From Macrostomum lignano (lineage: Eukaryota), in contig NIVC01000028.1 of NCBI GenBank assembly GCA_002269645.1, positions 1 through 64,000 of the forward strand: 64,000 nucleotides of DNA. The letters run 5' to 3'. This document shows, piece after piece, positions 1 through 47,651 of this stretch (within the stretch, counting starts at the first letter, position 1; every line of letters begins with the position of its first letter). The notes beneath the pieces were generated by a model. It searched no databases, had not been told where the DNA came from, and saw only the letters and a list, made by a program, of their open reading frames with translations. The translations under genes and the position numbers were made by a program.

Positions 1-800
1 GGTAAAAAACATGAGATTACCTCATGCGGATGCCATCTGAAGATTGCCTACGGATGGTTGTTTCAGAAGGGACAAATCGGCTACTGAAGTCGTGAGCAAA
101 ATAGCAAAATAGCTGCTCTGGACCTCGCTTTTTCGATAAGTTGCCACTCACTGTGGATCGAATGGAGCAAGGGTTAACGGCAGACCAGGAACTCAAAGAG
201 GTTATACATACAATGCAAAAGGGCAAGGACCTACCGGAGCAATTTGCGAAAGTAGCTGAGCTGCAAGGAACATGTGCTGCTGTTGGATCAGCGTAGCTCG
301 TATTCTTACGCCAGTGAGATTGAGACCACAGATTATCAGATACCTGCACAGTGGCTTTTCTCGATATTTGAGTGAAACAGTCCAGGACATGCCAGCAAAT
401 GAGACCATCAAAGAAACCTGCATTGAAGCCTTGACAGGTACCAAAGCGACATGGTCAAGACTACATGCTTACTTAGGACAGCTGGACGGAAGCAACTTCC
501 TAGTCATTGCTGATGCCAAACAGACTCTGGTTATTAAGGTGCTGCGTCGGACATATTTCAACTACGGAGTTCCTGACGTGCTTGTCACTGACAAATGAAG
601 GTAGCTCGTTGCTAGTGATACGGAAGCTTTGGCTCAAAATAATGGGTGCTTTGCACCTAAATCAGGTGGCTGAAGGTGAAGCTGAAGCAGCTGAGCGAGG
701 TAGATCCGGAGATTTGCAAGCAACAGGCACTCTATGGCGTCGCGTCTACCCCAGAAACCTAGCAGCGCACATTGTCAGGAGATGATTAGATGCAGCTTCA
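1..800 (+). mobile_element. Degenerate Ty3/gypsy LTR-retrotransposon pol fragment (end of RNase H, integrase zinc-finger region, start of integrase core)
   Basis: HADAI*RLP at ~23-49 matches the NADALSRLP motif ending gypsy RNase H. RILTPVRLRPQIIRYLHSG resembles the RVVIP..LR..VL..LH.GH integrase zinc-finger lead-in. FLVIADA..VIKVLRRTYFNYGVPDVLVTD resembles the rve core. In-frame stops and frameshifts are present. The right boundary is approximate. Confidence 0.8.
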
Positions 801-1363
801 AAAATTGAATGACGCTAATGTATCGGCGGTCATATGAGAAAACCACTGCAATAGAGAGTGAAGAGAAAGTTGATGCAAGAGGCGGTGGAAGACGAGCTAC
901 ATCTGGTGGCCTGCGGACCAGTCATTGAATGAACAAGGCCAATCCTTAAGCCCTTTTTATTTATCACAGTGGTGTCTCCATGACTGCTTATATACGCGGT
1001 CATAGTTCTTTCGGCCAGCGTTTCTTAGCTGGCTTTTTTCCACATTTGTTTTTTTTTCCTAAGAAATTTAAAATACTGACTCTAACACTGATATACGAAC
1101 TCATACAAGGATACGGATACTTAAGTTCTATTTAACGAAATGAAATAGCTGCATATCCAGCTACTCATGCGTAAGCGGCCTCTAATAAACACATTTGCTG
1201 CGATAGAAACATGAAACACTAGTTTCACGGGCAGCGTTCGCCGCAACACAAAACATAGTTTTCAATGTGGTATTTTTGCGTTTTAAAAAGGCAATACTCG
1301 TAGCAGTAAATTTTACCAAAAGGTTTCTACGCATTTTAGGTTCCCGATTGAGCCGCAGTGCAG

Positions 1364-4300
1364 GGAACCTCAGTACAACATAAAGTACAACGTGACTACT
1401 TCCATGTCAGCAACATTGAAAAAGCAGTCAGTTTTGATCTGCCTCAGGCAATCGTGTCCTGTCAAATCGATCCCGTTTTGTGCCACTCCATTCAGATGGC
1501 ATCCGATGCGGAAATTGTATTGTCGGGTGAATATGCCAATCACAGCAACTCCAGTGGGCCTGAAGCAAGCCGCACGTTTCTTATTGAACAACTGTGCTTA
1601 GGTAATGAATTTACTACTAGCGTAGTATATGAAATAAGCAATTGTATAGATTTTCTGTATTTACTTGCAGATCTCTGTTCTGAAATGGACCTTCTCAGCA
1701 CCGGAGTAGCGCAAGCTCTAGTGCGATCTGATAGCACACACTCAACAGTACCCATTGATCGAATCCGAATGACTCAACCTGCTGTGGTTGCTGATGCTGC
1801 TGTCAGCGCTACAGAAGTTACGGTATGTAGTGGAGTAGGAATGTTGCCATAGATGTTTCTATCCCTTGCATCCTCAGCCTCTTGCATCCTCGTTCAATCA
1901 ACTTACCTGCAGATCAAATTCAGCCAACCAGTTTTGGTAGTGGCTATGTCCGTTTTGGGCCCTGGTCTTCGAATTACTGATTTGTCTGGACAGCCTAAAA
2001 CTTTCACTGAGCTGAAAGTGGATATTTTAGATCAAAGTACCGGAAGTTTCGTGACGGAAAGCGTCAGTTTTAACAGCGTAATGACAATTTTATTGTGTGC
2101 TAGTGCAAGGCGAGTATATGGTTCATTTCTTTGCTGTTTACTCATCCAGAGCTTATCATCTTCTATTTTAGCAATCTCCGCTGGATGCTCAAGGTCAGCC
2201 TTACCTGCTGAAGTTTCGCAAAATCATTGTCACTCGTCACGTCAGAGCATTTCCCCAACCTCGTGTGGCCATCAAGCTTGAGCTTTTTGGATGCGTCCTG
2301 GATCTGGGGGAGTTCAGTTGCGTCAACAAAACCAGCCTCAGCATTCTTTCGCGCCACGTGCGCTGCTTTGGAAACTGGCCTGTCGTGTACTGGAATTTCG
2401 ACACGAAATTTCAAATGAACCAATCAATTTTGAGATACTCTGGCGGCTTCTGGAGCAGTCAATTCAATGAGTCTGAGTCTAACTCATCATGGACTGGACT
2501 CAACGCTATTTCACTTTTGTCTCTGGTGTCTCAGTGGCGTCTTAGGATCGATGCCTGGCTTCAGGACGGCCGGTTCAGATACATCGAATGCTTTGTCTTC
2601 AGAGTGGCTCAGAAAGTTGATAGATTCATGCTCAGAGTCTCTGACTGCGATGGAGGTGACTTCAATGGCTCTGCATTTCAGGCTCTGAATGGCAGCAGCT
2701 TCTCAGCCCGTGACTCTGGGGACAAAGCGGACGCAGCAATCGCTTCTGGCAGCGGATGGTGGTTTGGAAGCGATTCTGCAGCACCGAAAATGACCGGATC
2801 TGGAACGGATGGAGCTGATGATGTCATGCAATGGGCTGGCGGAGAAGAGATCTCTGCGGTGCAAATGAGAATTTTGCAGCTAACTGAAATTGAAACAGGT
2901 GAGCATCGAATTCGGTTTACTGCATAACGAATTACCCGTCAAACCAATCAATCACGACCTTCATCAATGTTACTTCAGCTGCTGCATACGACTCGGGCTG
3001 TTTCTCCGATGCCAGCTGCACTCTCTCGAATCACACAGTCTGCAAAGCGTGGCAGGGCAACCGAACTTTGGCTTGTCTCTGCCGAATCGGATACAGATGG
3101 CACAGAGGTCGCTGCAAGCCAGGTTAGCATTTCTAACTAACCTTTGATTCAAATAACAAGCTTTAGTGTACTCAACAACATTGAAAAGTCGTTACCTTTG
3201 AGAGGTATTGACTTTTGAGTGACGTAACTTGCGCCACGCGACGCAAAGTTGGGCTGGGTGAGGAGGGGTTGGGAAGAGCGGAGGACTGAATTGGATGGAT
3301 TGAAGCTTCCGCCCGGTTTTCATTGTTTCTCAAGCATTTTTAACTATAAAAATGGTTTGACAGATGATAGACACTGGTAAAAAGACATTGCTCACTGGGG
3401 CAAAGGGTGGCGACTTTTCAATTTTGCTGAGTATAGATATTTTTGCGCAATTTAAGCAATTAAACCTTAATTTTCAGAGGTAGACATGGCAATTAGAAGC
3501 TCGTTAGCACAGGCTCCATATCTCGTCAGGCATGAGCAATCAACGGTTACATGGCAGCTGCGTCTACAAGCCGTAAGCGGAGTCAGTGGCTTTCCATCAG
3601 CGACTCAACCAAATTTAAGATTCTTCATCGGTGCAGAGGCACCAAATGCGACGCAGTTCGAAATGCACGCAGTGAAATCAGGTGCCGCCAGTGCTGGATG
3701 GGACATCGGTCAGGAGGAGGACCTCAAGTTGAACGGATCCATCGTTCTTCCATCTGGAAGCCGATGCCTCGATATCAACCGGCTTTGCATCACCGTCTCG
3801 GCTGACCTTGACGCAGCCTTTGTGGAGGCAGACGAGAGGGACAACTGTGTTTGTGAGCTTGTGGTGCCCATTTGCCAGCCGGAAATAGATGTTTCGCTGG
3901 TGCTAAAACCATTCCAGACAGTCATTACCAGAGGTGTCGCTGGCCAGCTCTCTCTCACTGCGGAGGTAACTGCCACTAACGCTGCTCCTCACGATATTGC
4001 TGAGGTTCAGGATACCGACTCAAACTTTGTGCTTAAGTCAGTGCTATCAAGGAGCAACTGTTCGATTCAAACAGCTGACTGTATTACAGCAGACACCACT
4101 GTGATGCTAGTGATGGTTGGCGATGGAGATGCAGCTGTGAGACAAAATGGAGTCGTCAGGGGCTCAGCAATGCTAGTTCCGTAAGTATCTATTTAGAAAT
4201 TCCAAAAAATATTGTTAATTTCATTAATATTTTCTCTTTCAGAATAAACACAACCGAAATTGTACTGAACCTGAGCGTTTGCGAGGCATCGCGCTACATC

Positions 4301-7300
4301 TGCGTTACAGTTGAAGCTGGAACCAACGCGAGCTACAAAGACCTTGCGCTCGAAAACAACTTGCAATGTACTCCGATTTCCTTGAACTGTACGCCTTATG
4401 CGGATGTGAGCATGGCCAACTCATTAACCTTCGTGGCTAATGGCAGTTGGCTGTCACAATACCCAGCCTTGCTTGTAGTCGATCACTCGTTTTATCTGCA
4501 ATCTGGAGTTCCAGTAGAGCCCGTGCCGGCTGGAACAAATCGCACAAACTTTGAGTTTCAATTATTTCTAACAGACGAAAACTCAACTCTCCGTGTGCCA
4601 TCATTAAGGACTGCAGTTTGTGACGAGGCTGAGAAGCGACAGGGACTCACCCACAACGCGACTGTGACGTGTCAATACATGTTCAACGTGTCGAAGACTG
4701 TGTGTCCCATGCTCAGTCTGCTATGCTCAGAACTGTTAATTGGCTCAGGCGCTTCTTACACCCAGTCTGTACCAGCAAACAATATTCGATGCAGTTCTCT
4801 AGCAGACAGAATTTCTTGCCGCGACTCTCCAATAACCAACTTTTCCTGCTCATCTCTGACACAACTGATTCTGGAATTTAACTCAACAGTTCAACTGCAG
4901 CTTAGTTGGTCATCTGGGTCTGCAATTCAAACGAATGTCACATTCGAAAGAGTTGGTTCCGTTGTTTGGAACTGGAACACAGCAGGTCACGTGCACAGCT
5001 TTGCGTCATATATACAGTCTATTTCGTTTGATTTTACCGATCACGTTGGACACTTTAATGTTTCCTGCGATGCTTGGAACGACGCTGGTTTCGTCTCAAA
5101 GCAGCTGGAGTTAGAAGTTGTTCCAGATCTGAGTAGCATTCTAAGCGTAACGCTTCCGGCTGTAGAAACTCCCGCGCCTGTCAAACAGAACCTTACATTT
5201 CGAATGCTGTATGGCAGCGATATTTCTGCCACAGAATACTCCTGTCTGCTTCAGACAAAATATTTAGAAGTGAATTTTACGGATCTAACTCTGAAGAGGA
5301 GCGAGCCACTGTTCGTTCCTATAGAGTTCCTAACCGATGTTCCATTTTTGTTATTAAATGTCTCCTGCTGGAACGCCCTGTCGGTCAGAAATAATTCTCT
5401 CTACGTCATCCTGCAGCAAAACATTACCGGCTTGCGATTGGAGGTCTCACAGCTGCTGCGAACTTATCAGTTTGGTTATTTAATGATCTCAGCTGAAACT
5501 GGCTCCCACGTAAATTTTCTGGTCAGCTTTAGCAACGGCAGTACACTCGATATTAATTCAAACCAGTCAGTGCATGCTCCCACACAGCTCAACCTGTCAC
5601 TTCTGTTTTCGAGTCCCGGAGTTCACACGATAGAAGTCACTGCTACGAATTTCCACACCCATGCAGCTCAATCAGCAATTGTCATTGTTCAAGAGCCAGT
5701 AAGCAACCTTACAGTGTCTGCTCCGCCGTTTGTGAATGACTCACAACTCGGCCTGACTGCCCAAGTTGGCTTTCTTCAGCGAATGCCTACAAACGCCTCG
5801 TGCAATGCAACATTCGGGAAGCAAAGCAGAACATGGAATGTGGAATCGCTCACGATCGAATTGAACTTCACCTGCCAGGCTGAAATCACAGCGAGACCTT
5901 GGAATCTCACGCTCAGCTGCTCAAACCTGGTGAGCTATGAAGAAACCCATACTACTGTATTCTGTCAGCAAAGCATTCAAGGAGCAAGAGTCTTTGGACC
6001 AGTGGCTCATCCGGCTGGCAGTGAGCTCAGTCTAAAACTCAGCTTTGATCGAGGCTCAAATATCCTTGTTGTGACACATCTCGGCGACTCCGATATAAAG
6101 AATATGTCCCTTCTGTTTGGTAGCACACAATTTATAAATCACACCTATGCAGACGCGGGGAACTACACCGTCAGAGTACTGCTCTACAATCAGGTCAGCA
6201 TAGTAGAGCTCTTGTTCGGACCAATAGTTGTTCAGGAAACTATTGCGAATGTCGAAATTCGATACCCGCACACAGTGCTGTACACTCCAGCAATTGTCAA
6301 CTTCAGCTTAAGTGGACCAGCATACAGAAATGTTCACTGTCAGTTCAGATTTTCAAAGTTTGGCTCAGGCTATCTATATATTCCCCAACTCAATGAATCT
6401 GCTTTGTTCGAGCGCAGCTTCCCTCGCGAAGCGCTTGGAGCCTGGAACTTTTCGGTGAACTGCTCCAATATGGTCTCGTCGTGGCTAAAAATTCTGCCAG
6501 TGTTCATTGAGCTGGATGCCGTCATCATTGAAAATTTACAGCCAAACGGTACTGCGTTCTACACTAACGCTTCTTATATGACCCTAAATATAGCCAGGTT
6601 TGGCACCCACGGCTGCTTTGTTGTCAACTTTGGTGACAACTCTTCTGGTGAATCTTTCGGTGCTGCAGATCTGTGCGCACCGTATAGTATGCGAGTTGGT
6701 GCCAATTTCACTAAACTACCTTATGATACTCGGATAGTGCATCTTCAGCATACGTATCCGGCAATCGGTGAATATATAGCCACTGCTTTGGCGTTCAACC
6801 ATGTTAGCAACGACACGGCTCAGTGCTCCATCATTGTCAACGACTGGTACTGCGAGCGTCCGCTCATCAACTTCACTGTCAACGGAATCCTGGTGAATCT
6901 CACTGACCCTACTGAACTCCCGCCAGAGATCATGAGGTCATCCGATGTAATCATCGAAGCCCTTCCGTTCATAAACTGCTCAAAAACATCCATCACAATT
7001 TGTTCCTGGTCAATAAAAGATTCGGCAGGAAATGAGCAGAACCATTTGTCATATCATGATTCGTTTACTTTCAACATCTCGAGGCTTAGTCTATGGTACG
7101 GAAAGTACAGAGTGTCACTCAATGTATCGATGTCGGGCGTTCAGCCTCCAGTGTGGTCAACCTCACAGCTGACTATCAACATTGTCAAGACGCCGATTAA
7201 GGTGTCCCGTATCGACGGGCCAGAAGTTGCGGCTTACAACAGCACGCTAAGCCTAAGTGTTGCAAACTCTACTCGCGACTTTGATGTCAGCGAGGGAAAT

Positions 7301-10300
7301 CTTACTGGCTTCAAATTTTACTGGGCGTGTTGGAGAGATGGATTGGAGGAGCCTCCAAAAGTTGACATGCTGCTGCCGAACATCACTGCACCATTAGTTT
7401 CCAATTCCAAAGTCTTTACTGGCTGCTATGGAAATGGTATCGGCCTCATCCATAGTGGGAGTGCAGCTACCATAGAAATTAACACCTATCACATGCTTCC
7501 AAACCACTCTTATGCCGTTCGAGTCACAGCCCAGAAAGACAGTCGCCAAGATGCCGCAATTTTGAATTTGTTAATTCGGCTACAGCCCGCGGCCATTCTA
7601 AGCATAAGGTAGAAAATATCATGTCCGAGTTAATATATGCTACCAATCTGACATGTATTGCTGCTCATTATCTCTGATTACAATCATTCCATTTCAGCTG
7701 CATCAAAAACTGCGACAAGAAAGTGAAGGCTTCGAGAGAGCTGCTTTATCAGGTTTCTTGTGTTCAGTTCTGTGGAACGAAATTCTCGAATGTTACATTT
7801 TCTTGGATAATAAGGCTCACGACTGATACTTTACCTCAGAGCAAGTTATTTGCTGGTAATTCATCTTTAATTGATATTCCCAGCAGTTCCCTCATCGAGG
7901 GTGGCGTTTACTTTTTGACGGTTCAAGGATCCTGCAAATGGTGTGACGGAGATACCTTAATAACGACCGCCCTCGTCGTGAACATTGCACCATCTGGAGG
8001 CAACTGCACTGTTGCTCCGCTGCAGGGATTTGCAATGGTGACAAAGTTTCAGATCTCCTGCTTTGACTGGAAAGAGTTTAACGTCACAGTCAGTCAATTA
8101 AACTACGAGTTCCGGGTGCGCCAGAAAGGCAGCAGGCGCAGCATTTTGCTGTTCAGCAGCTCCATATCGACCTCGCCGCTGGTTTTCTTTCCAGTTGGAT
8201 CAGAGACCGACGAATATCGGGAAGAGATTGTCGTGGCTGTTTCCGACAGCCTTGGAGACTCAAGAAATTTCGTATTTCAACTGCAGGTAGGTGTTTTATC
8301 TGGAGTATTGCTGAAATGTTCCTGCTACCGCACTTGAACTTCTTACTGACACTTTAGGTGTTTCCGCCACCTGTACCTGCTGAACAGCTAATCACCAACA
8401 TCAGCTCAATTTTCAATGGAGAAAACGACGAGCTTACAAAATTCCTGGACACTGGAAACCAGCAGGCAGCTTCCACGACTCTCATTTGCGTGGTGTCAGT
8501 TATGAACTCGCGTAACGATGATGCCGAAAGTGCCAATGCGAGTCAGTCGCTTAGGGAATTTTTCACCGAACAAATGTCTCAGGTAGGACAGATTTAGGAA
8601 TGAAAGCAAGCAGCTTAAACATATACGGCATCTGTAAATATTCCTTTCAATCTGAAAATTTTCAGCTCAGAACTCGCTACGTCAGCATCGTCAGTCAGTT
8701 TGCTGTAAACACAACCAACTCACTTGAGCAGACTAGTGAGCTGCTTAGAAGTGGAGCCGCCGAAAATCGAGTCACTCAGCTAGACATGACAGCTCAGGTA
8801 TTTAGTTATTAATTGTGTTTTCAAAAAATTTCTTAAAATAAAAATAATAACGAAATCATATAACTTGTTGGGAATGAGTAAGCGGGTAAGTCTTTCTTAT
8901 ACTCGTAAAAAAACAAATAGATTTTAGACTAAGTAATATAGGCAGAGAGCCAAAGCCAACTTACCTCTAGATTTCCTGTCTAAACATCGGAATGTACGTG
9001 TCAGGGGGATTCAAATGCTTCGCTTATTTTATTACATCATCGGCGCTGCCTCTGCCCCCAGCAAAATGTTCTAAGTAATTTGAAACACATCCCCCGCGAA
9101 CACCGTTCAGAACCTCAGCTCCGGAAAGCTAGCAGAAGTTTCACTAAAGTACAAGGAAATGCGACACAACTTGACAAATGATGGCCGTTCGCTCATGGCC
9201 GAAGGTTAGTAAAAAACTGAATTAGATGAATATAGTGAAGACTGTTCTCTAATTTGAGCAAATTTACCCTTTTAGACCTGGTACTGACAGGATCTAACAT
9301 CTGGCTGGCATCCAGCCTCTCAATGAGGGCGGCAGAGCTGGCTGACAACAGCAGCTGCGAGTCCATAAGCTGCAACAGCAGCCTCGCTGAAACAAGACAA
9401 ATGCTGCGTACCGTGCTTGAGAAAGCCATCGACTCAATCAGCAGCATAACCGAAGATTTAATCACCGATTCAAATCAATACGCGATTTCAAACAACTGGA
9501 TCTCGGCAGTGGGCAGTCGAGGTACCAATTTGAGCTTCGAGGCGCCTCAGGGCAGCGTACAGATCGATGAGCCACCCCCTAGTGACTGCAGCAATGACGG
9601 AGGCATCAAGGCTCTTCTATCCCGCAAGAACCCATTTTTATGGCACGAGTCCTCGGCCTCAGTAGCATCCAGTGTACTTACAACTCGCCAAACACTGTGC
9701 GATCAAAGTTTACCCTCAAATACATCCTCTCGGGTCAGGCGTTCCGCTGTCTCTCAAGCATTTGCGGCCTCTTTGCTCATGTCCGTGCCAGATCCAATCA
9801 GCATCAATGCGACACCGTCGGACAAATGGCTGCAGATTCAGCACTCGTTTTCCATAAACAGCAATCAGCGGGTGATAGTTTTCCTGCAGCCACTTCAGCA
9901 GGGGCAAACTTTTGACATATTTGTGGCATCAGGGACACCACCTAATCCTCAAAAACACTTGTTAAACTTCACCTTGCCCAGTAACAAGTCTGTTAACTCA
10001 CAAGAGTCAACACGAATTCTCATCACCCCTGGACTTCTAAACGCATCAGCTACCAACTACATCAGCGTCAGGCGTCACGGTTGCTCGAGAGACCCGACTG
10101 GTCACGTGACTTGCTCCGATCCCACAGTCGCTTACAACTTCTCAATCATTGAGCTGTCCTGCAGGCATTGGGATGCTCTGGCGGCCTCGTGGGTTTTGCT
10201 GGGCCCAGAAAGCTGCCAGCTTGCAGAAGTGGCGGATACAAACAGAGTTTCCCTTCGATTCAATTTGCTTGGCAGCATTGGTGTTGGTCTCAATGTCTCA

Positions 10301-13300
10301 CCGAATCTCATCGACTTTGGCAGTCTTTTCAGCAACTGGCAGGGCAAGCTGGCCGACAGCGCGGCAGTCGTCGCCACCGTGGTAACTTTGTGGCTTATCT
10401 TCATTCCCATTGGTGCCATTTTGAGACGGGCTGACAAGGGAGATAGAATACTGGTTAGTTGTTTTGTTTTTAATACTTTCCTGCGAACACAAAGTATAAA
10501 AATCCAAAAAAATCTTTCAGTTTACCTACGAGCCACTAATAGATGACAAAAGTCTGGCACAGGTCTACCTTATCGATGTATTCAACGGAAAACTTGACTG
10601 CTGCATTCAACAGATCTGTATGACTGTTGTTGGAACAAAAAGCACAGAAAGTTCCAGAATTCTTGACGACGGAATCCGACAGGTGAGCTATTCTCAAAAA
10701 GCGTTTTGTTATAGACTTGCTTAACTAGATTCACATATTGATACGAAATTTCAGAGCTTTAAGAGCAGTTCTATCGATCGGTTCCGCATGACGACAAGCA
10801 GCAATCTAGGGGATATTCTCAAACTGCAACTGCAGCTGACTGCCGTGCATGAGGAATTGGAGCTCTGGATGCCGAGAAAGATCGTTGTCACCGACACAGT
10901 CACTGGAGCCATGTATGAGTAGTTTCTAAAGCCTGATAAATAAATCACTTTGGTAACGATGTCTAAAAGACTTAAAAGTACCATCTGTATTTAATTTTAA
11001 GGTACTTCTTCATACCGGACACCCCACTGACCGGTGACGGACAACCTGCATCAATTTATCTGTCCTCACAAGGCGATTTGAGACGTTCACCGGGTTTCCT
11101 CCGCCACAACTTTGGCCGCAAGCTCGAGGACGAGCACTTGTGGGTATCTGTGATGAAGCGATCTACTGAGACAAATTTCTCCAGACTGCAGCGCTTCACC
11201 ACCTGCTTCAGCGCACTCTTTATCACCATGGTGACGAATGCAATGTTCTTCGGAGTGGGCGATGCGATATCAGCAGGCCAGTCGGACCTCAAGCTTGGGC
11301 CGCTGACCATGTCAGTGGGCTCTTTGATTGTATCCGTGATTAGTGCACTCATTGTGGTGCCCGTCACTGCTGCCATCACGCTGATATTCCTAAAGTCAAG
11401 GCAATATCAAGAATCGGACTCTGGTAGTGGTGATTGGCAGCCTTCTCACCAACATTCGGACAGGCAGAATATCTATAGTGTAATTGAGGTAGGTATTCCT
11501 CCAAAATTATCGTATGTTTAACAAGATACGCAAAAAGATTTCGTTTACCTATTTCAGAGCGAATCTGATGAATCTGCAATCGAGTGGGACAGCCTGGAGT
11601 GCACCCCCATTCAGCCTCTAAAAGAGACAACTAAGCCAGTTCAGCTTCCTTACTGGTGTCAGTTTATTGGGTGGTTCATAGCGCTCAGCACCATCATTGT
11701 ATCAGGAGTCTTTATCGTTTTCTACGCAATGGATTGGGGGCAGGAGAAGTCGCAAAAGTGGCTGCTCTGCTTCATTCTTTCGTTTCTGGAAACGGCCTTC
11801 CTCATCCAGCCCATGAAGGTAGTCCTCATTGGATTCATATTTGTCATCGTGATGCGCAAGGACAGCGACGTAAAAAATTCGGAGCGCGTCAGGGTGATGG
11901 AGATCGACGAAGACGATAACTCATGTACGTATGTGAGTGAGAATAGCTTAATGTAGACAGGAGAATCACATTGTTCTCCATTTCAAATTGCAGGTCGCGT
12001 CTGCTACCTAAGCGAGCTGCAGAAGAAACCGCAGCCAGAAAAGCAGGCAGTGTTTTGCCATGGGCTGCAAGCCGGTCTGAGCCTTCTACAGTTTGCTCTG
12101 CTTTGTCTCGCCAGTACAGGCGCTGTCGACACTCGAGCATTTCGGTTGCACAGCAGCCTCTTGAATCATCTCAATTTGTCCTGTCTGCAGTCAGCCAGCG
12201 TTGCCAAGGCAGTGCTGCCTTGTCTATCCGAGTCTGTCGTTCCAGCGCTTTTTCCTACAGAGAGGTCGGCTCGGTCTGGGTTCATTGCTGACAATGCGGG
12301 CTTCCTGCTTGGATCACCTCGCCTGAGCCGAATTCAAAGTGCCGACTCGATGCAGTCAGCAGCCTTTGCATCGCAAATCGATGCCAGCAACGCTACAGAA
12401 GCTATCGATCTGCCAACCAGTTTAAATGCGACCATCAAAATGCTGCAGTCACTCTCTGATTTCAATTGGCTGAATGCCAACACAAGGAAAATCAAGCTGG
12501 GACTCAGCTTATTTTATCCAGATGCCTCTCTGTTCACTTACGCTGTCTTCACCATCAACTGTGAGTCTTTCGGAGGCTGCGAGTTGACTTGGAACATGGA
12601 CTCTGCACCGCTCAGTCGCTACGTTGGTGTCGTGGGTATCGTCCACCTCTGCGCTGACTGCCTGGCCGCTTTGGTGACCGTTATCTGCATTGGAGCTTCA
12701 ATGTACACCGCTGTGACTCTCGGATTTAAAGTGTTCGCTACATCTGGCTGGAACATCCTGGCCTTGGCGGCATTTGTGTTAGCAGCGATAGCCTGGGTCT
12801 GTCTGCTACTCCGTTGCTTGGCGTCTACTAGCGTCTCAAATCTACAGGCTGTGATGCAGTTGGATCGGCAGTTCTGCAACTGCCTCGCTGTCGCCACCTT
12901 CTTGCTACAGCTGCGGCTGCTTCAGCTGGCTAGGCTCACCCGACACCTGAGGCACCTTGTCGCCACAGTCAGCTGCTGTTTGACTCAGTTGGTTGCCTAC
13001 CTTGCTCCGCTGTCTCTGGTTTTTGCTGCTTTTGCCTGCCTGTTCTACCTCTCCATGGGCTCTCAACTCCGTCAATTCAGCTCGATGCCCGCCACTCTGC
13101 AGCACCTCTGCAACGCTGCCCTTGGGGCATCAGATTTTCGCAACGTTATGCAGCGGAACATCCTTAACCAACTCTGCTATCTGGGCTTTGTCTGCTTTCT
13201 TATTCTGGTGCTGATGAACATCTTCGTGGCTGTCATCAACCACGGCATCGGTTTGAGCAAGTCAAGGACAGACAACGAAGATCCGGATCAGCAGCTGGCG

Positions 13301-13592
13301 AGCTACATTGTTGAAGGTCTTCGCAATATTTTAGCACCCAGGAAGCATCGAACTAAACGGCTGAAAACTATTGGTGAGTGAATAGCCGTCTGTAAGGTTT
13401 AGGCCAAAAGTTTTGGTTCAGGCTTTGGGTGTTTCTTTAGCGGCCCATTTCCGCTTTAATTCCGCAGACCCGAGCAGGCAGTTGTCAGCATCCGTCAGTC
13501 GCCTGACAGCAACTTTAACTAATCTGGCTGGGCCATCATTTACGACAGCTGAGCAGGCCATTAGACGGGTAATCATCCCGGACAATTCATGA
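1364..13592 (+). CDS. Polycystin-1-like (PKD1L/REJ family) 11-TM receptor-channel subunit, ~3,490 aa, 5'-incomplete
   Basis: Exons: ~1364-1822, 1913-2077, 2172-2898, 2979-3122, 3478-4180, 4243-7608, 7698-8286, 8358-8582, 8666-8797, 9111-9204, 9276-10453, 10521-10682, 10755-10912, 11002-11488, 11558-11924, 11994-13373, 13468-13592. All introns are GT-AG, phases match and the total (10461 nt) is divisible by 3. Motifs: PKD-repeat ends (PGVHTIEVTATN, AGNYTVRVLLYN, IGEYIATALAFN), REJ (SCIKNCDKKV, PSGGNCTVAPLQG), GPS-like CRHWD...W, PLAT (VYLIDV...SFKSSSIDRF...LGDI), EHLWVSV, LPYWCQFIGW, KWLLCFILSFLE..LIQP.KV and C-terminal polycystin channel helices (ILVLMNIFVAVI). Confidence 0.93.
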
Positions 13593-17527: not shown

Positions 17528-18784
17528 TCATCGTGTATGCTTATTATCTGTTGAGTTGACAGGCTCTGCTGAGGCCTGGGCGTCAGCGGTAGGGCCAGCA
17601 GCAGTGGTTGCAGCTCCGGTTGGCTCAGCCAAGGTCAGGCTGATGGGCTGGTACCAGGCCATTAGTCGCACCTTCGCCTCCTGCTGCATTCGTCGCGGCA
17701 GTAGCGGCACTTCTACAATCTCGCGCGGCTGTTTGCGCTTGTTGTTCTCGAATTCTTTGAGTAGTCGAGCTCGCTGGGAAAGCCGGCCGTAGTGCTTTTT
17801 CATCGGGTCTTGAAGGCGGTGCCGCTCGTGCAACGGAATTCGGTTCTGAGGGTGCGGGAGGCAGGTGGTCGATCGTGTGACCTGACATGGATAAAGACTT
17901 GGTTTAAGGAAAAACAATAAATTGGGCGCTCATGTTCCTGATTTTTGTGCACAGCAACAAGAGCAACAAAATACATTGTCAGACAGTCAAGCACCGAATG
18001 GCGCGAGATTCAGACACGTTCATCCCTTGAGCTGCCTGTCATCTGTTTTATCTGAGTTGAAGGAATTAGGAAGCTAGTCAAGTGCTAGTTAATTAGTCCA
18101 GCGACCACAGAACAAACTTAGCTGTTGTACGGTCAGGTAAGATTAAGCAACTGAAAAGCGGACAAGAAAAAATACGAAAACATTTAGGAAGACAAGCCTA
18201 ACGAAAACAAGTAAACATTTGACAGGACCGGACAATAGAAGAAAGGAAGATGTGTTGCAAGTCAAGAAGACAAGTGCATGTAAGTGAAATAAACTAAGGC
18301 CGATCAATGCATTAAAACCCTACCGCATCGGGCCACAGCTGCACCAGAACAGTTTTCATTTTGCCCTCATAGTAGATGAACTGCTTCTTCAGAGCCAGCG
18401 AAGACATTCGTGCTTTCCTGGTCTCCTCGCTCTCCTCGTCATCATAGTCATCGTCGCTTCTGGATTGTCCAGCCAGCGTGCGGTGGCGAGGGCCGGGGCG
18501 AAGAGGACTAGGGTCGCGGTAGTGCGAGTTCCTCGCCTGACTGGCGTCCTCAAACGAGGAGGAGGTTGAATTCAATCCCGCCGCATCGCTGGCGGCTGCA
18601 GCAGCGGGGGAGGTCGTGCCTTCGGCGCAGAGATTGTTGGCGGTGAGCTCTGGCTGCTGCACGGGCGGCGGCTTTTGCTGGGCTGATTTCTGGTCTTTTT
18701 TGCGCCCCTGCCCTCGTAGAGAAGTTTCGCATCCACCAAAAATACATCTGCGTGTGGAGCAGATTCAGGTCAGTTATAGATAAT

Positions 18785-18868
<84 letters not shown>

Positions 18869-18869
18869 C

Positions 18870-18928
<59 letters not shown>

Positions 18929-18929
18929 C

Positions 18930-18988
<59 letters not shown>

Positions 18989-19045
18989 CACAGACAGACA
19001 GACAGACACACAGACAGACAGACAGACAGACAAACAGAGGGACAC

Positions 19046-19112
<67 letters not shown>

Positions 19113-19382
19113 CACAGACAGACAGACAGACAGACAGACAGACCTAGTCGTAGTGGGGCTGCCACCAGCTGCTCCAGCTTGTTGAACAAGGCGCTGACGT
19201 TGTTGCCTTCGGGCCATCAGCAGGCACGGTGCTGCTGTGCCGTGCGCTGTGGTCGCCGTGCCAGACTCCGACGAACTGCCAGGAGGGCTGGTTGGGCATT
19301 GGCGCTTGATAGCTGCCGTCTTTAGTATTGCTGGCCGGCATGACTTCTGCTGAGTGAAACTGCCGAGCTGCCCTCGAGTCAT
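17528..19382 (-). CDS. Hypothetical protein, 3 exons, 338 aa, no family recognised
   Basis: Exons 19382-19144, 18747-18324, 17881-17528. Junctions AG|GTCTGT...CAG|A and GCG|GTAGGG...CAG|GTC are GT-AG with matching phases (2, 0); total 1017 nt. Exons are GC-rich. The C-terminal part looks ordered ([32 protein letters not shown]...RARLLKEFE...EIVEVPLLP). Further 3' exons are possible. Confidence 0.7.
18788..19143. repeat. (ACAG)n/(CTGT)n microsatellite filling intron 1 of the hypothetical gene
   Basis: About 350 bp of tetranucleotide repeat; on the minus strand it starts exactly at the GT donor. Confidence 0.97.
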
Positions 19383-20084: not shown

Positions 20085-20762
20085 TCAGACCAGAGGTACA
20101 AATGTGACTCCCATCAGGGCTCGCCGGCTGAGGCTGCCATCCAGCGCTCTGTCCAGTCGGACAAGAGTCTGCCGGCCAGCAGCCGGACCCACAGGACAAA
20201 CCAGACGTCCACCAGGCACAAGCTGATCTGTCAGGTCGGGCGGCACCGACTGTTCGGCGGCGGCGCCCACGTGAATCGCGTCGAATGGTTGCTCGGTTGG
20301 AAAGCCGCGCCGGCCGTCACCAGTTGCCATGGTGATTGCGCCAGAATCCAGGAGTTCTTGAGTGGCCGAGCAGCCGCGCAGATTTGCGGTAGCCTTCGTG
20401 ACAAGAGCGTCAACATGGTCGATGCCGATGACTCTGCCTGTCGGACCGACTAGGTAAGCCATGCAAGCTGTAAGGTAGCCAGAGCCGCTACCAATGTCTA
20501 GCGCCTTCGCACCGGGGACCAGTTTTGGTGCCAGACAGCTCAGCGCTATGGCGTGCATGTGCGGCGCTGAAATGGTCGCCCCGTGGCCGATGCTTTGCGG
20601 TGAGTCAGCGTACGCGTAGAGTGCATCGCGGGGGAAGAAATTGCCTCGGTCAATTACCAGCATTGCCTCCTCGGCGCTCGAATGGCTGATTGCGCCTGAA
20701 CGGAGCAAATCTTTTACTAGGCGTTGCTGTCCAGTAAGGATCGGTTTTTTCTTTTCGGTCAT
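20085..20762 (-). CDS. PCMT1: Protein-L-isoaspartate(D-aspartate) O-methyltransferase, intronless, 225 aa
   Basis: Motifs: DSPQSIGHGATISAPHMHA, ALDIGSGSGYLTAC (SAM motif I), GRVIGID, GDGRRG, PFDAIHVGAAA, QLVPGGRLVCPVG, ALMGVTFVPL. Confidence 0.96.
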   Translation of the reverse strand: MTEKKKPILTGQQRLVKDLLRSGAISHSSAEEAMLVIDRGNFFPRDALYAYADSPQSIGHGATISAPHMHAIALSCLAPKLVPGAKALDIGSGSGYLTACMAYLVGPTGRVIGIDHVDALVTKATANLRGCSATQELLDSGAITMATGDGRRGFPTEQPFDAIHVGAAAEQSVPPDLTDQLVPGGRLVCPVGPAAGRQTLVRLDRALDGSLSRRALMGVTFVPLV

Positions 20763-27341: not shown

Positions 27342-30300
27342 ATGGCAGCCGTGGCCGCTTGGCTGCCATTCGCCCGAGCAGCGGCCATCGGCTGGGTGCC
27401 GGTAGCCCAGGGTCCGATGCCGCCTCCGCCGGTGCGGGGTCGCGACTGCGGCAAGTCGGACGAGAAGCTGATCATCAGCGTGTCCGGCCGCAAATTCGTC
27501 ACATGGCGCAACACACTGGAAAAATATCCGGACACTCTGCTTGGCAGCGACGAGAAGGAGTACTTCTACGACGACGACAGCAAGCAGTACTTCTTTGACC
27601 GAGACCCGGACCTGTTCCGTCACATCCTGGCCTACTACCGCACTGGCAAGCTGCACTGCCCGAAGCACGAGTGCATCACGGCCTACGACGAAGAGCTGGC
27701 GTTCTTCGGCATCATGCCGGACATCATGGGCGACTGCTGCTACGAGGAGTATCGCGATAAGAAGCGCGAGAACAACGAGCGACTAATGGACGACAAAGAC
27801 TCCGATACGGAGAACAAGATGCCAAACACTACCATGCGAGAGAAGCTGTGGTGCGCGTTCGAAAATCCGCAGTCTTCAACTACCGCGCTAGTGATTTACT
27901 ACGTGACAGGATTCTTCATAGCACTGTCGGTGCTGGCTAACGTACTGGAGACCATTCCCTGCGGCATTGTGCCTGGCACCCTAACTAACCCGGCTTGCGG
28001 TGACAAATTTAATCAGGCATTCTTCTGCTTGGACACCGCCTGCGTCCTCATCTTCACTGTCGAGTACGGTGCGAGGTTCTACGCTGCGCCCTACCGGTTG
28101 AAACATATGCGGGCCGTGATGAGCGTCATTGACATTGTGGCCATCCTGCCGTATTACATCGGTCTGTTCATGCCGGATAACAAAGACCTGAGCGGCGCGT
28201 TCGTTACGCTGCGAGTGTTCCGAGTGTTTCGTATCTTCAAATTCTCCCGACACTCGATGGGCTTGAGAATTCTGGGCTACACGTTGAAGTCCTGCGTGTC
28301 TGAGCTGGGCTTCCTGCTATTCTCAATGACCATGGCTGTCATCATATTCGCCACTATCATGTACTACGCCGAGAAGAACCAGCCGAAGACTACATTTGTG
28401 TCAATTCCGGCTGCGTTTTGGTATACAATTGTTACCATGACAACGCTTGGGTGAGTCTCACAGATGCAAGTGTGACACACGCTATTGGCTTTTGCACCGC
28501 CAGTGCAGGATGCATTTCAGATCAGAAGCGCTCTTGTCTCCTCAATTTTGAAACCCGTCTGAAATGCGAGAAATTAAATCTGTCGTTAGAAAAAAATACT
28601 GATTTTCCAGAATTTCAACCAGAACACGATTTCCAATTCCAATGTGTCTGTCGCCAGTGCTGAGCCTTTTTGACAACATACACGCACTCACACTCAGACA
28701 ACGGGGGATCATGTTTTTCGATGTAGACAGGAGCTCAGATAGCGCCCTGATTAATCCCCAAGCTTCGGATTGATGCGACAGAGAGAGAAGCAGAGAGAGA
28801 GAGGGGGAGAGAGAGAGACGAAACACGAGGCGTTGAGTGAGTTAGAGCACTCTCTCAAGGGCAAGGTGGGTCGGGAGCAGAGAGAGAGAGATAAAGAAGC
28901 ATCAGCTCCCTTGAGCAGTCCCCAATCTTTTAGATCAAATCCCCTACCGGCTAGAAAATCAGCTTAAGCTTTGCTGATTTATGAGCTCGCCCGAGTGCTG
29001 CGGAGAGGCGGATGGATCACATTTTAATCTGCTGGCCCCCTCATATTTCTCTCGCCGGCTATCTCAGCTCGCTCATCTGATCCCGCTCTTCTCTCCTCTC
29101 ACCTTTTTGGCCTCTCCACACCGGCCGGCGCAGTTAAGGACGAGTGGGTGTGGGGGACGCGGCGTGGCGCATCCGGGAGGGCCAGAGAGGGGCTGCTGCT
29201 GGGGATGGGTGGCCCATCTTGATCGATACGAGCTGTGCGGGGGCTGACGGTGAGTGAAGAGGGGATATGGAAAGTGTGAGCTGCCTTGCTCTGCTTTGAT
29301 GCCATTGCTGCTCAGGTTATCCGCTCTCAGCGATGCCCAATGCGCTTTCCTCCCCCTGTCCGTCTCTCTTATGCAGGATGCACGGATTGCTTCTGCCGCC
29401 CTGGTGTGAATTAATCCTGCTCAGCTGGGGACTGACTGACTGACTGACTGACTGACTGACTGACTGACTGACTGACTGACTGACTGACTGACTGACTGAC
29501 TGACTGACTGACTGACTGACTGACTGACTGACTGACTGACTGACTGACTGACTGACGGTCTGTCTGTCTGTCCGCCCTACCCAATCAGTGTTAAACTGCA
29601 GGAAGCAATTTTTGAAAATGTGAAACTCCGCAGCAAATTTCGTGGCGGAATTTCTGGAATTCTGGCCAAAAAAGCAATCCAGGCAAAATTGAAAGCAACA
29701 ATGTTCATTAGCTTCTTCGGCTACCCAGTTAGCAAGATCCATTAGAGGGAATCATTTTACGGAGAGGCTGTCTCGAGCTTAAGCCCTGCCTAGTTTGTAA
29801 AGTAGGCCCTCCTAGTGCAGCAATGGGTATTATCATCTATTAGCCTTTAAGCTTAGGTGAACTGCATTTCTTTTTTTACCTTTCATTCATTTCACTTTCG
29901 CAATTAGTCGGGCACAATGCGCTAGGATTTAACCTAGCAGAAAAAGTGCAAGTCCAATCCGGCTGTTCCGCCCGGCAGGCAACAGCTGAATGAGAGGCAG
30001 TGCTGGTCAGCGCCCACTGCCATAAGCACTGTGCACTCGCCAACTGTGTGCATAGCGCGTGGGCTGTTGGCTCAGCTAAGTCATTAGTGGTAAATGTCGC
30101 ACTATTATTACAGTTCATTTCTTTGCCAATAAACCCAAACAGTTTTGTCCGTGCTTGAACGCTTCAATTGAAACTTTGGTTTCCGGTTCCTTTTGTGACT
30201 CTAATTGGATTGGATTGCTAATCTATGCTACTGAGGATGTAGTGGATTGCTAATCTATGCTGCTGAGGATGTAGTGGATTGCTAATCTATGCTGCTGAGG

Positions 30301-33300
30301 ATGTAGTGGATTGCTAATCTATGCTACTGAGGATGTAGTGGATTGCTAATCTATGCTGCTGAGGATGTAGTGGATTGCTAATCTATGCTGCTGAGGATGT
30401 AGTGGATTGCTAATCTATGCTACTGAGGATGTAGTGGATTGCTAATCTATGCTACTGAGGATGCAGTGGATTGCTAATCTATGCTACTGAGGATGTAGTG
30501 GATTGCTAATCTATGCTACTGAGGATGTAGTGGATTGCTAATCTATGCTGCTGAGGATGTAGTGGATTGCTAATCTATGCTGCTGAGGATGTAGTGGATT
30601 GCTAATCTATGCTACTGAGGATGTAGTGGATTGCTAATCTATGCTACTGAGGATGTAGTGGATTGCTAATCTATGCTGCTGAGGATGTAGTGGATTGCTA
30701 ATCTATGCTACTGAGGATGTAGTGGATTGCTAATCTATGCTACTGAGGATGAAGTGGATTGCTAATCTATGCTGCTGAGGATTTAGTTAGTGGATTGCTA
30801 ATCTATGCTACTGAGGATGTAGTGGATTGCTAATCTATGCTACTAAGGATGTAGTGGATTGCTAATCTATGCTGCTGAGGATGTAGTGGATTGCTAATCT
30901 ATGCTACAGAGGATATAATGGATTGCTAATCTATGCTACTGAGGATGTAGTGGATTGCTAATCTATGCTGCTGAGGATGAAGTGGATTGCTAATCTATGC
31001 TGCTGAGGATTTAGTTAGTGGATTGCTAATCTATGCTACTGAGGATTTAGTTAGTGGATTGCTAATCTATGCTACTGAGGATTTAGTTAGTGGATTGCTA
31101 ATCTATGCTACTGAGGATTTAGTTAGTGGATTGCTAATCTATGCTGCTGAGGATTTAGTTAGTGGATTGCTAATCTATGCTGCTGAGGATTTATTTAGTG
31201 GATTGCTAATCTATGCTACTGAGGATTTAGTTAGTGGATTGCTAATCTATGCTGCTGAGGATTTAGTTAGTGGATTGCTAATCTATGCTACTGAGGATTT
31301 AGTTAGTGGATTGCTAATCTATGCTACTGAGGATTTAGTTAGTGGATTGCTAATCTATGCTGCTGAGGATTTAGTTAGTGGATTGCTAATCTATGCTACT
31401 GAGGATGTAGTGGATTGCTAATCTATGCTACTGAGGATGTAGTGGATTGCTAATCTTTGCTTCTGAGGATGCAGTGGATTGCTAATCTATGCTACTGAGG
31501 ATTTAGTGGATTGCTAATCTATGCTACTGAGGATGTAGTGGATTGCTAATCTATGCTGCTGAGGATGTAGTGGATTGCTAATCTATGCTACTGAGGATGT
31601 AGTTAGTGGATTGCTAATCTATGCTACTGAGGATGTAGTGGATTGCTAATCTATGCTACTGAGGATGTAGTGGATTGCTAATCTATGCTACTGAGGATGT
31701 AGTGGATTGCTAATCTATGCTACTGAGGATGTAGTGGATTGCTAATCTATGCTACTGAGGATGTAGTGGATTGCTAATCTATGCTACTGAGGATGTAGTG
31801 GATTGCTAATCTATGCTACTGAGGATGTAGTGGATTGCTAATCTATGCTACTGAGGATGTAGTGGATTGCTAATCTATGCTACAGAAGATATAGTGGATT
31901 GCTAATCTATCCTTGCGAAAAAGTTTTGACCCCATTTGTGTATCAGTCAGAAAGGGATAAAAAAATCCTACAAGAAGGCATTCATACGCAGCAATCCGCC
32001 TAGCAGCCCACCCGTCAGCCTCGCCGTGGGACATTCGCCATAGCAACCAGTTTGCCTTGGGGATTCGCACGCTTGGGTGGCATTTTGTCTGCGCATTTCT
32101 TCAGGAGTTCTTCAGCGTAACGTCAACTACTGCTGCTGCTGCAGGGTCTAGTGCTGGACTGGCATAGTAGCATAGCGGAATGGGGGATTACTGGCTCGGT
32201 CCTTTACTGGGCGGCTGCAAATGAACGCAGTTTTTTCTTTTTTCTTTTCTGCATTTACCTGTCCAACTTAGCAGTTTCCCTCTGTGATGCCTATCTTTTA
32301 TCAGACAGCCTGAATATGGTTATACCACTTGTGGCTGTCAGACTTTTTGACAATATTAAACTACAGAAAATGTCAGACTTTATTGACAATTAAACTACAG
32401 AAAGTGCCTGACTTTATTGACAATTAAACTACAGAAAGTGTCAATTTTTTGACAATTGAACTACAGAAAGTGTCAGACTTTATTGAGAATTAAACTACAC
32501 AGAAAGTGTCAGACTTTATTGACAATTCAAGTATAGAAAGTGTCAGACTTTATTGACAATTAAACTACAGAAAGTGTCCGACTTTATTGACAATTAAACT
32601 ACAGAAAGTGTCAGACTTTATTGACAATTAAACTACAGAAAGTGTCAATTTTTTGACAATTAAACTACGGAAAGTGTCAGACTTTATTGACAATTAAACT
32701 ACACAGAAAGTGTCAGACTTTATTGACAATTAAACTACAGAAACTGTCAGACTTTATTGACAATCAAACTACAGAGAAAAGTGTCAGAAGTTATTGACAA
32801 TCATACACAGAAAGTGTCAGAAGTTATTGAGAATCAAACTACAGAGAAATTGTCAGACTTTATTGACAATCAAACTACAGAGAAAAGTGTCAGAAGTTAT
32901 TGACAATCAAACTACAGAGAAATTGTCAAGTTATTGACAATCAAACTAAAGAGAAAGTGTCAGAAGTTATTGACAATCAAACTACAGAGAAAAGTGTCAG
33001 AAGTTATTGACAATCAAACTACAGAGAAATTATCAAGTTATTGACAATCAAACTACAGAGAAAAGTGTCAGAAGTTATTGACAATCAAACTACAGAGAAA
33101 TTGTCAGACTTTATTGACAATCAAACTACAGAGAAAGTGTCAGAAGTTATTGACAATCAAACTACAGAGAAATTGTCAAGTTATTGACAATCAAACTACA
33201 GAGAAAGTGTCAGACTTTATTGACAATCAAACTACAGAGAAATTGTCAAGTTATTGACAATCAAACTACAAAGAAATTGTCAGACTTTATTGACAATCAA

Positions 33301-39300: not shown

Positions 39301-39602
39301 CCCCCCCGCCACTGCAGAAGGCCCGCTTGGCGCGAATCAAAATGGCCAAAAATGCCTCCGGCGCCGCGTTTATCAGCAGCAAGAAGCGCGCGGAGGAGCG
39401 CCGCCGCGCCCACGCAGAGCTGCTGCAGGCCGCCGCTGCCGCCTCCGATGCTGACGGCCAAGGCGGACAGCTGGAGCTGCCGGACGAAACGGACGTGTTT
39501 GAGCTGCAGCACCATCACCTGCTCACCTGCTTGGAGCGGACTACGGTTGGTGCCTGTCTGTTTGTCTGTCTGTCTGTCTGTCTTAGTATCTGTCTGTGTG
39601 CC

Positions 39603-39643
<41 letters not shown>

Positions 39644-39646
39644 TAG

Positions 39647-39683
<37 letters not shown>

Positions 39684-39686
39684 TAG

Positions 39687-39747
<61 letters not shown>

Positions 39748-46319: not shown

Positions 46320-47530
46320 ATTCTTCCCCTGAGTCTTTGTTTCATTCTGATTCTCACTCTGAGTCTTTGTTTCATTCTGATTCTCACCCTTAGTCTTTGT
46401 TTCATTCTGATTCTCACCCTTAGTCTTTGTTTCATTCTGATTCTCACTCTGAGTCTTTGTTTCATTCTGATTCTCACCCTTAGTCTTTGTTTTATTCTGA
46501 TTCTCACCCTGAGTCTTTGCTCTTTGTTTCATTCTGATTCTCACCCTGAGTCTTTGTTTCATCCTGATTCTCACCCTGAGTATTTGCTTCATTCTCATTT
46601 CTCACCCTAAGTCGTTGCTCTTTGTTTCATTCTGATTCTCACCCTGAGTCTTTGTTTCATTCTGATTCTCACCCCAAATCTTTGTTTCATTCTGATTCTC
46701 ACCCTGAGTACTTGCTTCATTCTGATTCTCACCCTAAGTCGTTGCTCTTTGTTTTATTCTGATTCTCACCCAGAGTCTTTGTTTCATTCTGATTCTCACC
46801 CCAAATCTTTGTTTCATTCTGATTCTGACCCTGAGTCTTTGTTTCATTCTGATTCTCACCCTGAGCCTTTGTTTCATTCTGATTCTCACCCTGAGCCTTT
46901 GTTTCATTCTGATTCTCACCCTGAGCCTTTGTTTCATTCTGATTCTCACCCTGAGCCTTTGTTTCATTCTGATTCTCACCCTGAGCCTTTGTTTCATTCT
47001 GATTCTCACCCTGAGCCTTTGTTTCATTCTGATTCTCACCCTGAGCCTTTTTTCATTCTGATTCTCACCCTGAGCCTTTGTTTCATTCTGATTCTCACGT
47101 TGACTCTTTGTTTCATCCTGATTCTCACCCTGAGTCTTTGTTTCATTTTGATTCTCACCCCGAATCTTTGTTTCATTCTGCTTCTCACCCCGAATCTTTG
47201 TTTCATTCTGATTCAAACCCCGAATCTTTGTTTCATTCTGATTCTAACCCTGAGTCTTTGTTTCATTCTGATTCTAACCCCGAGTCTTTGTTTCATTCTG
47301 ATTCTCACCCTGAGTATCTGCTTCATTCTGATTCTCACCATAAGTCGCTCTTTGTTTCATTCTGATTCTAACCCTGAGTATTCGTTTCATCCTGATTCTC
47401 ATCTGAGTCTTTGTTTCATCCTGATTCTCACCCTGAGTATTTGCTTCATTCTGATTCTCACTCTGAGTATTTGCTTCATTCTGATTCTCACCCTGAGTAT
47501 TTGTTTCATTTTGATTCTCACCACAAATCA
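46320..47530. repeat. Minisatellite, 30-bp unit (AGTCTTTGTTTCATTCTGATTCTCACCCTG)
   Basis: 10-aa periodicity (SLFHSDSHPE) in the ORF track; ends ~120 bp upstream of the SDR ATG. Confidence 0.97.
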
Positions 47531-47651
47531 GTCTTATTCTGAGTCTTTGTCTTTGACTTTGAAATTCATCCGCCTTCATGATTTGCTCGAACCGCATTGG
47601 CAGTTTAAAAAATCAATAAAACAAATATTTAAACTCTCAAAGCTACCTGAA

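Follow-up and report, generated by a model that had tools for sequence, protein, structure and literature searches.

The first 64 000 nucleotides of contig NIVC01000028.1 of the flatworm Macrostomum lignano (GenBank assembly GCA_002269645.1, forward strand; this whole stretch is referred to below as the window) carry near their start a gene that, as read from its sequence, encodes a polycystin-1-like (PKD1L/REJ-type) receptor/channel subunit with 11 transmembrane (TM) segments. We consider it likely that this is a single gene of at least 17 exons, incomplete at its 5′ end, in which the polycystin body bears a head made up of a discoidin-like region, a fibrinogen-related domain (FReD) and an EGF-like module, and that the receptor has a sensory, ligand-binding role. 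Read from the membrane-distal end, the product would comprise a degenerate discoidin-like β-rich domain, a divergent FReD and one EGF-like module, followed by cysteine-rich and PKD repeats, then REJ, next a GPS-like stretch lacking HL/T, TM1, a PLAT domain, TM2–TM11, a polycystin (TOP) domain and a TRP-type pore; no part of the ectodomain found in the model lies further out than the head. Coordinates are collected in Table 1. The sequences compared below include three predicted polycystin-like proteins of M. lignano, collinear with the model over ∼2800 aa (UniRef100 entries A0A1I8JK18, A0A1I8JIH8 and A0A1I8JK13, referred to as P0060, P0012 and P0059), and L001, an unannotated contig of 30.5 kb and 31% GC (Logan SRR23372228).

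The polycystin-1-like identity proposed in a first-pass annotation of the sequence was borne out by the domains present (PKD, REJ, PLAT, Polycystin_dom, PKD_channel and ∼11 TM segments). PKD (Ig-like) repeats were matched in four stretches (PF00801, 60 bits) within an ectodomain holding 81 N-glycosylation sequons, and the REJ domain was matched over nearly its full profile (PF02010, 196.7 bits against a cut-off of 25; profile positions 6–447 of 452). The PLAT domain after TM1 was borderline (PF01477, 23.1 bits against a cut-off of 23) and aligned to the PLAT domains of P0060 and L001. Hydropathy gave ∼11 TM peaks between aa 2499 and 3333, and the protein ends in a polycystin (TOP) domain and a TRP-like six-TM channel. 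A GPS with an HL/T autoproteolysis site was not found before TM1: Pfam GPS gave no match, and the region at 10154–10282 reads VSLRFNLLGSIGVG, with RFNLLGSIG at the HL/T position, no HLT and no cysteine pair. The M. lignano homologue resembles the model at this position (KVNLFGSIGAG) and is likewise without an HL/T motif, so a polycystin subfamily of this kind may not be autoproteolysed.

The FReD, encoded by exon 4 only, is judged from its sequence to be real, divergent and well folded, and to lack the disulfide that flanks GWW. Pfam Fibrinogen_C (PF00147, cut-off 22) scored 35.6 bits (E = 1.1e-8; profile positions 41–185 of 221) on the isolated domain and 32 bits on the whole N-terminus. In a phmmer search of PDB sequences the first 34 of 41 matches were FReDs (ficolins, fibrinogen gamma and alphaEC, angiopoietins, tenascin), and phmmer run exhaustively over 1.84 billion representatives returned 50 matches, all of them on this domain (aa 205–434 of the query used). 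An AlphaFold (AF2) model of the N-terminal region was built from a 40-sequence multiple sequence alignment (MSA); over the FReD its predicted local distance difference test (pLDDT) values were 80–96, and Foldseek against the PDB gave TMt values of 0.66–0.74 at E ∼1e-12 (ficolins, ANGPTL2, tenascin, FIBCD1, tachylectin 5A). The MSA consists mostly of FReDs, and the modelled fold is supportive of the assignment without being fully independent of it. An AlphaFold run from the single sequence of the N-terminal 447 aa reached a pLDDT of 32 and its model was not used. The FReD call of the first-pass annotation therefore stands on profile, sequence and fold comparisons, as does its remark that the cysteines around GGWW are missing: the near-invariant cysteine column is occupied by Ala329 and no cysteine follows GWWFGS. 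The A subdomain is shortened, the Pfam match beginning only at profile position 41. By eye, the calcium-site stretch FSARDSGDKAD keeps part of the acidic residues of the FSTxDxDND-type consensus, out of register. A different pair, Cys281/Cys300 (YIEC...SDC), is shared with the M. lignano proteins P0058 and P0060 and is absent from P0039 and P0053, two small open reading frame (ORF) products in which an F5/8C (discoidin) domain precedes a FReD; this pair may substitute for the lost disulfide. Because the canonical FReD pocket appears to be remodelled, ficolin-like specificity for acetylated sugars should not be assumed for this domain.

The region between exon 1 and the FReD (aa 36–181) is probably a discoidin domain that has degenerated, its signature tryptophans being lost. 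It had been annotated in the first pass as ending in the F5/8C manner, and for its C-terminal ∼35 aa, KFRKIIVTRHVRAFPQPRVAIKLELFGC, this was upheld; for the domain as a whole it was not. The C-terminal strand motif (..aRyvRi.P....lrlELyGC) is present. A hidden Markov model (HMM) built without the query, from four L001 domains, P0039, P0053 and two pseutarin-C C domains, scored the region at E = 8e-4, a score equalled by one of 1000 shuffles, and hhalign against F5/8C gave 59% probability (P = 9.5e-5). These matches span only 31–36 residues. The first ∼110 residues are without detectable F5/8C similarity, Pfam F5_F8_type_C (PF00754) gave no match at E ≤ 10 either for aa 36–183 or with an upstream extension, and the region alone had no significant pairwise BLASTP match to the discoidin parts of P0039 and P0053. 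Together with the missing tryptophans and AF2 pLDDT values below 50 at residues 1–45 and 68–99 of the region, this would suit an unrelated or collapsed β-rich spacer in which a short F5/8C-like C-terminal motif is all that is kept. We regard such a spacer as possible, if rather unlikely, given the significance of the motif and several further features. Cys38 and Cys181 bound the region 143 residues apart, where a discoidin domain is expected to have its terminal cysteine pair ∼145 aa apart. P0039 has a PF00754 match above the cut-off (38.7 against 28.2 bits) directly before its FReD, P0053 has one below it (21 bits) at the equivalent position, and both share with the model the linker from discoidin to FReD (..LFGC-x-C..CFxNW). 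A profile of the position-equivalent family, in which the query is one of six sequences, matched the discoidin structures of factor V/VIII, neuropilin, lactadherin, CASPR2 and DDR1 with E down to 1e-36, and the AF2 model predicts β-strands throughout the region (pLDDT 30–74). The 50 Foldseek matches listed are all to FReDs and give no reading for this part. A degenerate discoidin domain thus remains the preferred assignment for aa 36–181.

Exon 5 encodes six cysteines with the spacing C-x5-C-x7-C-x10-C-x-C-x10-C, and the spacing in the M. lignano homologue is identical. The PROSITE EGF_2 pattern C-x-C-x2-[GP]-[FYW]-x4-8-C is matched by CLCRIGYRWHRGRC (aa 416–429). In Pfam the scores for this exon were below threshold (EB, 16 bits against a cut-off of 24.3; ADGRF3_N, 19 bits against 31) and no EGF family was listed. 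The module had first been labelled EB/EGF-like; the EGF-like half of the label is retained as the safer name, and EB was dropped.

The gene model comprises 17 exons on the plus strand (1496–13381). All of its junctions are GT–AG with agreeing phases, its acceptors are of the (T)TTCAG type, and its introns measure 62–94 nt except for two of 313 and 355 nt. The coding frame of 10 143 nt translates into 3380 aa without an internal stop. The single open product foreseen in the first pass was thus recovered at a lower length than the ∼3490 aa expected. Exons 3, 4 and 5, which had been joined there in phase, are each preceded by a polypyrimidine-(C/T)AG acceptor and followed by a GT donor, with matching phases (0/0, 0/1 and 1/1), and the three peptide strings quoted from them all occur at their places in the plus-strand translation. 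At the 5′ end the model begins with MASDAEIVLSGEY..., an M1 without a signal peptide; the frame is open upstream of the ATG to 1352, and an acceptor-like ttcag lies directly 5′ of it. The 5′ end is for these reasons likely to be incomplete, and the true one is probably absent from the model or lies beyond an integrase-like remnant at ∼260–600. This remnant (plus strand, ..GVPDVLVTDK) has frame breaks and no Pfam match. It stands just upstream of where the polycystin exons begin, is probably what is left of a retroelement and may be located inside an intron of the polycystin gene. A tblastn search of positions 1–4300 of the window with the head ORFs of L001 gave no match anywhere upstream of exon 4. 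At the 3′ end the stop codon is at 13379–13381, and a GT donor at 13375 leaves space for an additional 3′ exon.

Exons 1–5 and the polycystin body very probably form one transcription unit, as far as genomic sequence can tell, because the head modules are collinear with the body in the homologues. BLASTP of the model against P0060 and P0012 gave a single high-scoring segment pair in each case (aa 206–2981 and 206–2747, 26% identity, ∼830 bits) that starts at the FReD, crosses the junction of exons 5 and 6 and enters the TM region; the VDM motif just after this junction is conserved in the M. lignano homologue. A tblastn comparison of the model with L001 was likewise collinear from the FReD into the TM region and channel. 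The ORFs of L001 follow one another on one strand in the order Lectin_C, several F5/8C, F5/8C plus FReD, EGF-like, PKD/REJ, PLAT and Polycystin_dom/PKD_channel, with F5/8C and FReD within one uninterrupted ORF (P0053).

Some points weigh against this reading. The homologous M. lignano proteins come from gene prediction; L001 gives a genomic order, known from the contig alone, and not one transcript; no signal peptide was found in the model, and the 3380-aa product does not define the true N-terminus; and reading through the exon 5 donor leads to a stop after one codon (CKPG*). On account of this last feature one may formally envisage a short isoform that is secreted, or a gene of its own upstream. 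The locus would then hold two units, a secreted lectin-type protein with discoidin-like, FReD and EGF modules (exons 1–5) and a polycystin gene starting from the ATG at 3486, and the in-phase 3122/3478 splice would be coincidental or belong to an alternative isoform only. Besides the early stop, it would fit that intron 5 (355 nt) is the longest of the model, that exon 6 has an ATG 8 nt from its start and that P0039 and P0053 are products of only ∼350 aa. Two units are nevertheless improbable in our judgement: P0060 and P0012 run continuously from FReD and EGF-like module through the VDM-matching junction residues into PKD and REJ, the phases at the junction agree (1/1), a product starting MAIRSSLAQAPY would be without a signal peptide, and P0053, which was called as an ORF within a polycystin locus that is itself collinear, is not proven to exist as a protein by itself. 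We also considered that the locus might be a decaying pseudogene or an assembly chimera whose domain combination is biologically meaningless, with the degraded integrase-like remnant just upstream, the missing signal peptide and the degenerate discoidin-like region as its signs. This is very improbable for an open frame of 10.1 kb over 17 exons with consensus splice sites, with the family-specific cysteines conserved and the same order of modules in the predicted M. lignano proteins and in L001.

By analogy with its family, the protein would be the large subunit of a complex, formed in ciliated sensory cells with a TRPP partner of PKD2-like type. Its discoidin/FReD/EGF head could bind a ligand, or tether the receptor to glycan or matrix, and its engagement or tension on it would be passed through the PKD/REJ stalk to the channel. 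The ciliary receptor for carbohydrates or patterns suggested in the first pass is speculative. A broader proposal, put forward tentatively and considered unlikely as it stands, is that an unrecognised flatworm (perhaps also other spiralian) subfamily of polycystin-1-like sensory receptors carries lectin-type arrays at the distal end (C-type lectin, several discoidins and a disulfide-rewired FReD) and that its members, coupled straight to a TRPP channel, act as chemo- or contact receptors for glycans or surface patterns and do not sense flow or mechanical force alone, the gene in the window being a trimmed member.

To our knowledge the ligands of polycystin-1-type receptors are still largely unknown, and the chief clue to them is which modules the ectodomain contains. 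The head modules given in the PKD1/REJ literature are C-type lectin, SUEL, EGF, WSC and PKD (PMC1934368). A FReD/discoidin head was not found in the accessible part of that literature, nor was PF00147 or PF00754 present in any of the seven polycystin matches to the full protein. The first-pass annotation had called the combination unfamiliar; this holds for the accessible literature, and not for the databases, where it recurs in the M. lignano UniProt entries and the Logan contig. The architecture thus seems to have gone unrecognised so far, yet is present in public data in at least three sequences; it is a shared architecture overlooked by annotation and no unique fusion. Its recurrence implies that it is under some constraint. 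With a FReD, and probably a discoidin domain as its neighbour, at a polycystin tip, the range of head modules (LRR, WSC, C-type lectin and SUEL) is extended, within the already known theme of domain shuffling at the tips of polycystin-1 relatives. Standard annotation misses such FReDs, Pfam being blind to that of the M. lignano entries, and word-indexed searches fared no better: the N-terminal 431 aa gave no match, the full protein only distant PKD1L2 and Hydra matches, and an alignment (A1) returned only P0053 itself. This family escapes a word prefilter, and its links came from the exhaustive phmmer search. In flatworms, PKD1-like genes are amenable to RNA interference with rheosensory behaviour as a readout, so that one can test whether it is the head module that sets the stimulus.

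Table 1. Positions in the window of the parts of the polycystin-1-like gene and of other features.
Feature	Position	Strand	Remarks
Exon 1	1496–1601	+	aa 1–35; 5′ boundary uncertain
Exon 2	1671–1822	+	Start of discoidin-like region
Exon 3	1913–2077	+	
Exon 4	2172–2898	+	
Discoidin-like region	1671–2291	+	aa 36–181; exons 2 and 3 and start of exon 4 (2172–2291)
FReD	2292–2897	+	aa 182–383
Pfam Fibrinogen_C match	2370–2792	+	aa 208–348
EGF-like six-cysteine module	2979–3122	+	aa 384–431; exon 5
Cys-rich, heavily N-glycosylatable ectodomain, PKD repeats, start of REJ	3478–7608	+	Exons 6–7
Best Pfam PKD stretch	6011–6199	+	Within exons 6–7
REJ domain	6974–8474	+	aa 1577–2023; exons 7–9
GPS-like stretch, then TM1	10154–10423	+	TM1, 10367–10423
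PLAT domain	10608–11017	+	aa 2557–2639; exons 13–15
TM2–TM11, Polycystin_dom, PKD_channel/Ion_trans, stop	11002–13381	+	Exons 15–17
Polycystin_dom	12407–12613	+	Pfam, 28–30 bits
PKD_channel/Ion_trans	12728–13243	+	Pfam PKD_channel, 55–59 bits; Ion_trans, 40–42 bits
Protein-L-isoaspartate O-methyltransferase (PCMT)	20085–20762	−	225-aa ORF, 214.8 bits
Shal/Kv4-type potassium channel exon	27342–28454	+	Shal-type N-terminus, BTB_2, Ion_trans
Rfam K_chan_RES	38981–39093	+	82.3 bits; gathering score 51
ORF with adh_short match	46749–48149	+	71 bits, C-terminal part
Long tandem-repeat blocks and C-rich stretch	18650–19320; 30981–31418; 32650–34030; 34000–40000		GC skew of C-rich stretch −0.4 to −0.7

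In the rest of the window, two voltage-gated K+ channel genes lie downstream of the polycystin gene, one of Shal/Kv4 type and one of Kv1 type near 39 kb. The potassium-channel RNA editing signal (K_chan_RES) matched by Rfam overlaps a Shaker/Kv1-type S6 coding exon, and the match may reflect coding conservation and not a working editing hairpin. The PCMT ORF is intact and apparently intronless. One of the tandem-repeat blocks translates as (QTDR)n, and the C-rich stretch bears overlapping spurious ORFs on both strands. The ORF with the short-chain dehydrogenase (adh_short) match is probably an exon of an unrelated gene. No tRNA was found in a tRNA search of the window.

The closest known relatives are the predicted M. 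lignano proteins, which have in common with the gene in the window a FReD-like domain, the six-cysteine EGF-like module, PKD, REJ and PLAT domains, the polycystin domain and the channel. They differ in sequence (26% identity), are named only 'PKD/EGF-like domain-containing', and are partial gene models with no clear discoidin ending before the FReD. L001 has F5/8C, FReD, EGF-like, PKD/REJ, PLAT and channel on one strand in the same order as the window at 24–28% identity. Its lectin-type head upstream of the FReD is far larger (1926–10004): it has Lectin_C and no fewer than four F5/8C matches, of which three exceed the Pfam cut-off, besides ORFs whose PAN/apple-like look was judged by eye only. 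Positions 1–218 of L001 hold the end of another PKD_channel gene, which suggests tandem polycystin paralogues at that locus.

Vertebrate PKD1L2 and PKD1L3 and the sea-urchin REJ proteins likewise combine a PKD–REJ–PLAT–11TM–channel body with distal sugar-binding modules, and CTLD and SUEL lectin domains and an EGF have been described in heads of the polycystin-1 family (PMC1934368). They are 21–25% identical to the model, and their heads are built from C-type or SUEL lectin, LRR or WSC modules. The likeliest functional analogues are the planarian pkd1L genes, which are, like the homologues of the gene in the window, flatworm PKD1-like genes; Schmidtea mediterranea pkd1L-2 and its relatives are expressed in ciliated sensory neurons and are required for rheosensation (PMC11448475, PMC12626421). 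Fibrinogen, discoidin and lectin domains go unmentioned in the published Pfam-based comparison of their domains. Ficolins, tachylectin 5A and FIBCD1 share the fold (Foldseek TMt ∼0.7) and the conserved core motifs of the FReD in the window, which differs from them in the missing GWW-flanking cysteine pair, the shortened A subdomain and the stretch FSARDSGDKAD in place of the FSTxDxDND-type calcium motif, and which sits in a membrane receptor and is no oligomeric soluble lectin.

Among proteins whose ectodomain unites a discoidin domain, a degenerate FReD and EGF modules, those best known are CASPR/CNTNAP, and the CASPR2 discoidin domain was among the PDB matches of the family profile. Unlike the product of the gene in the window, these are single-pass adhesion molecules with laminin-G domains and no channel, and their discoidin domain and FReD are not adjacent.

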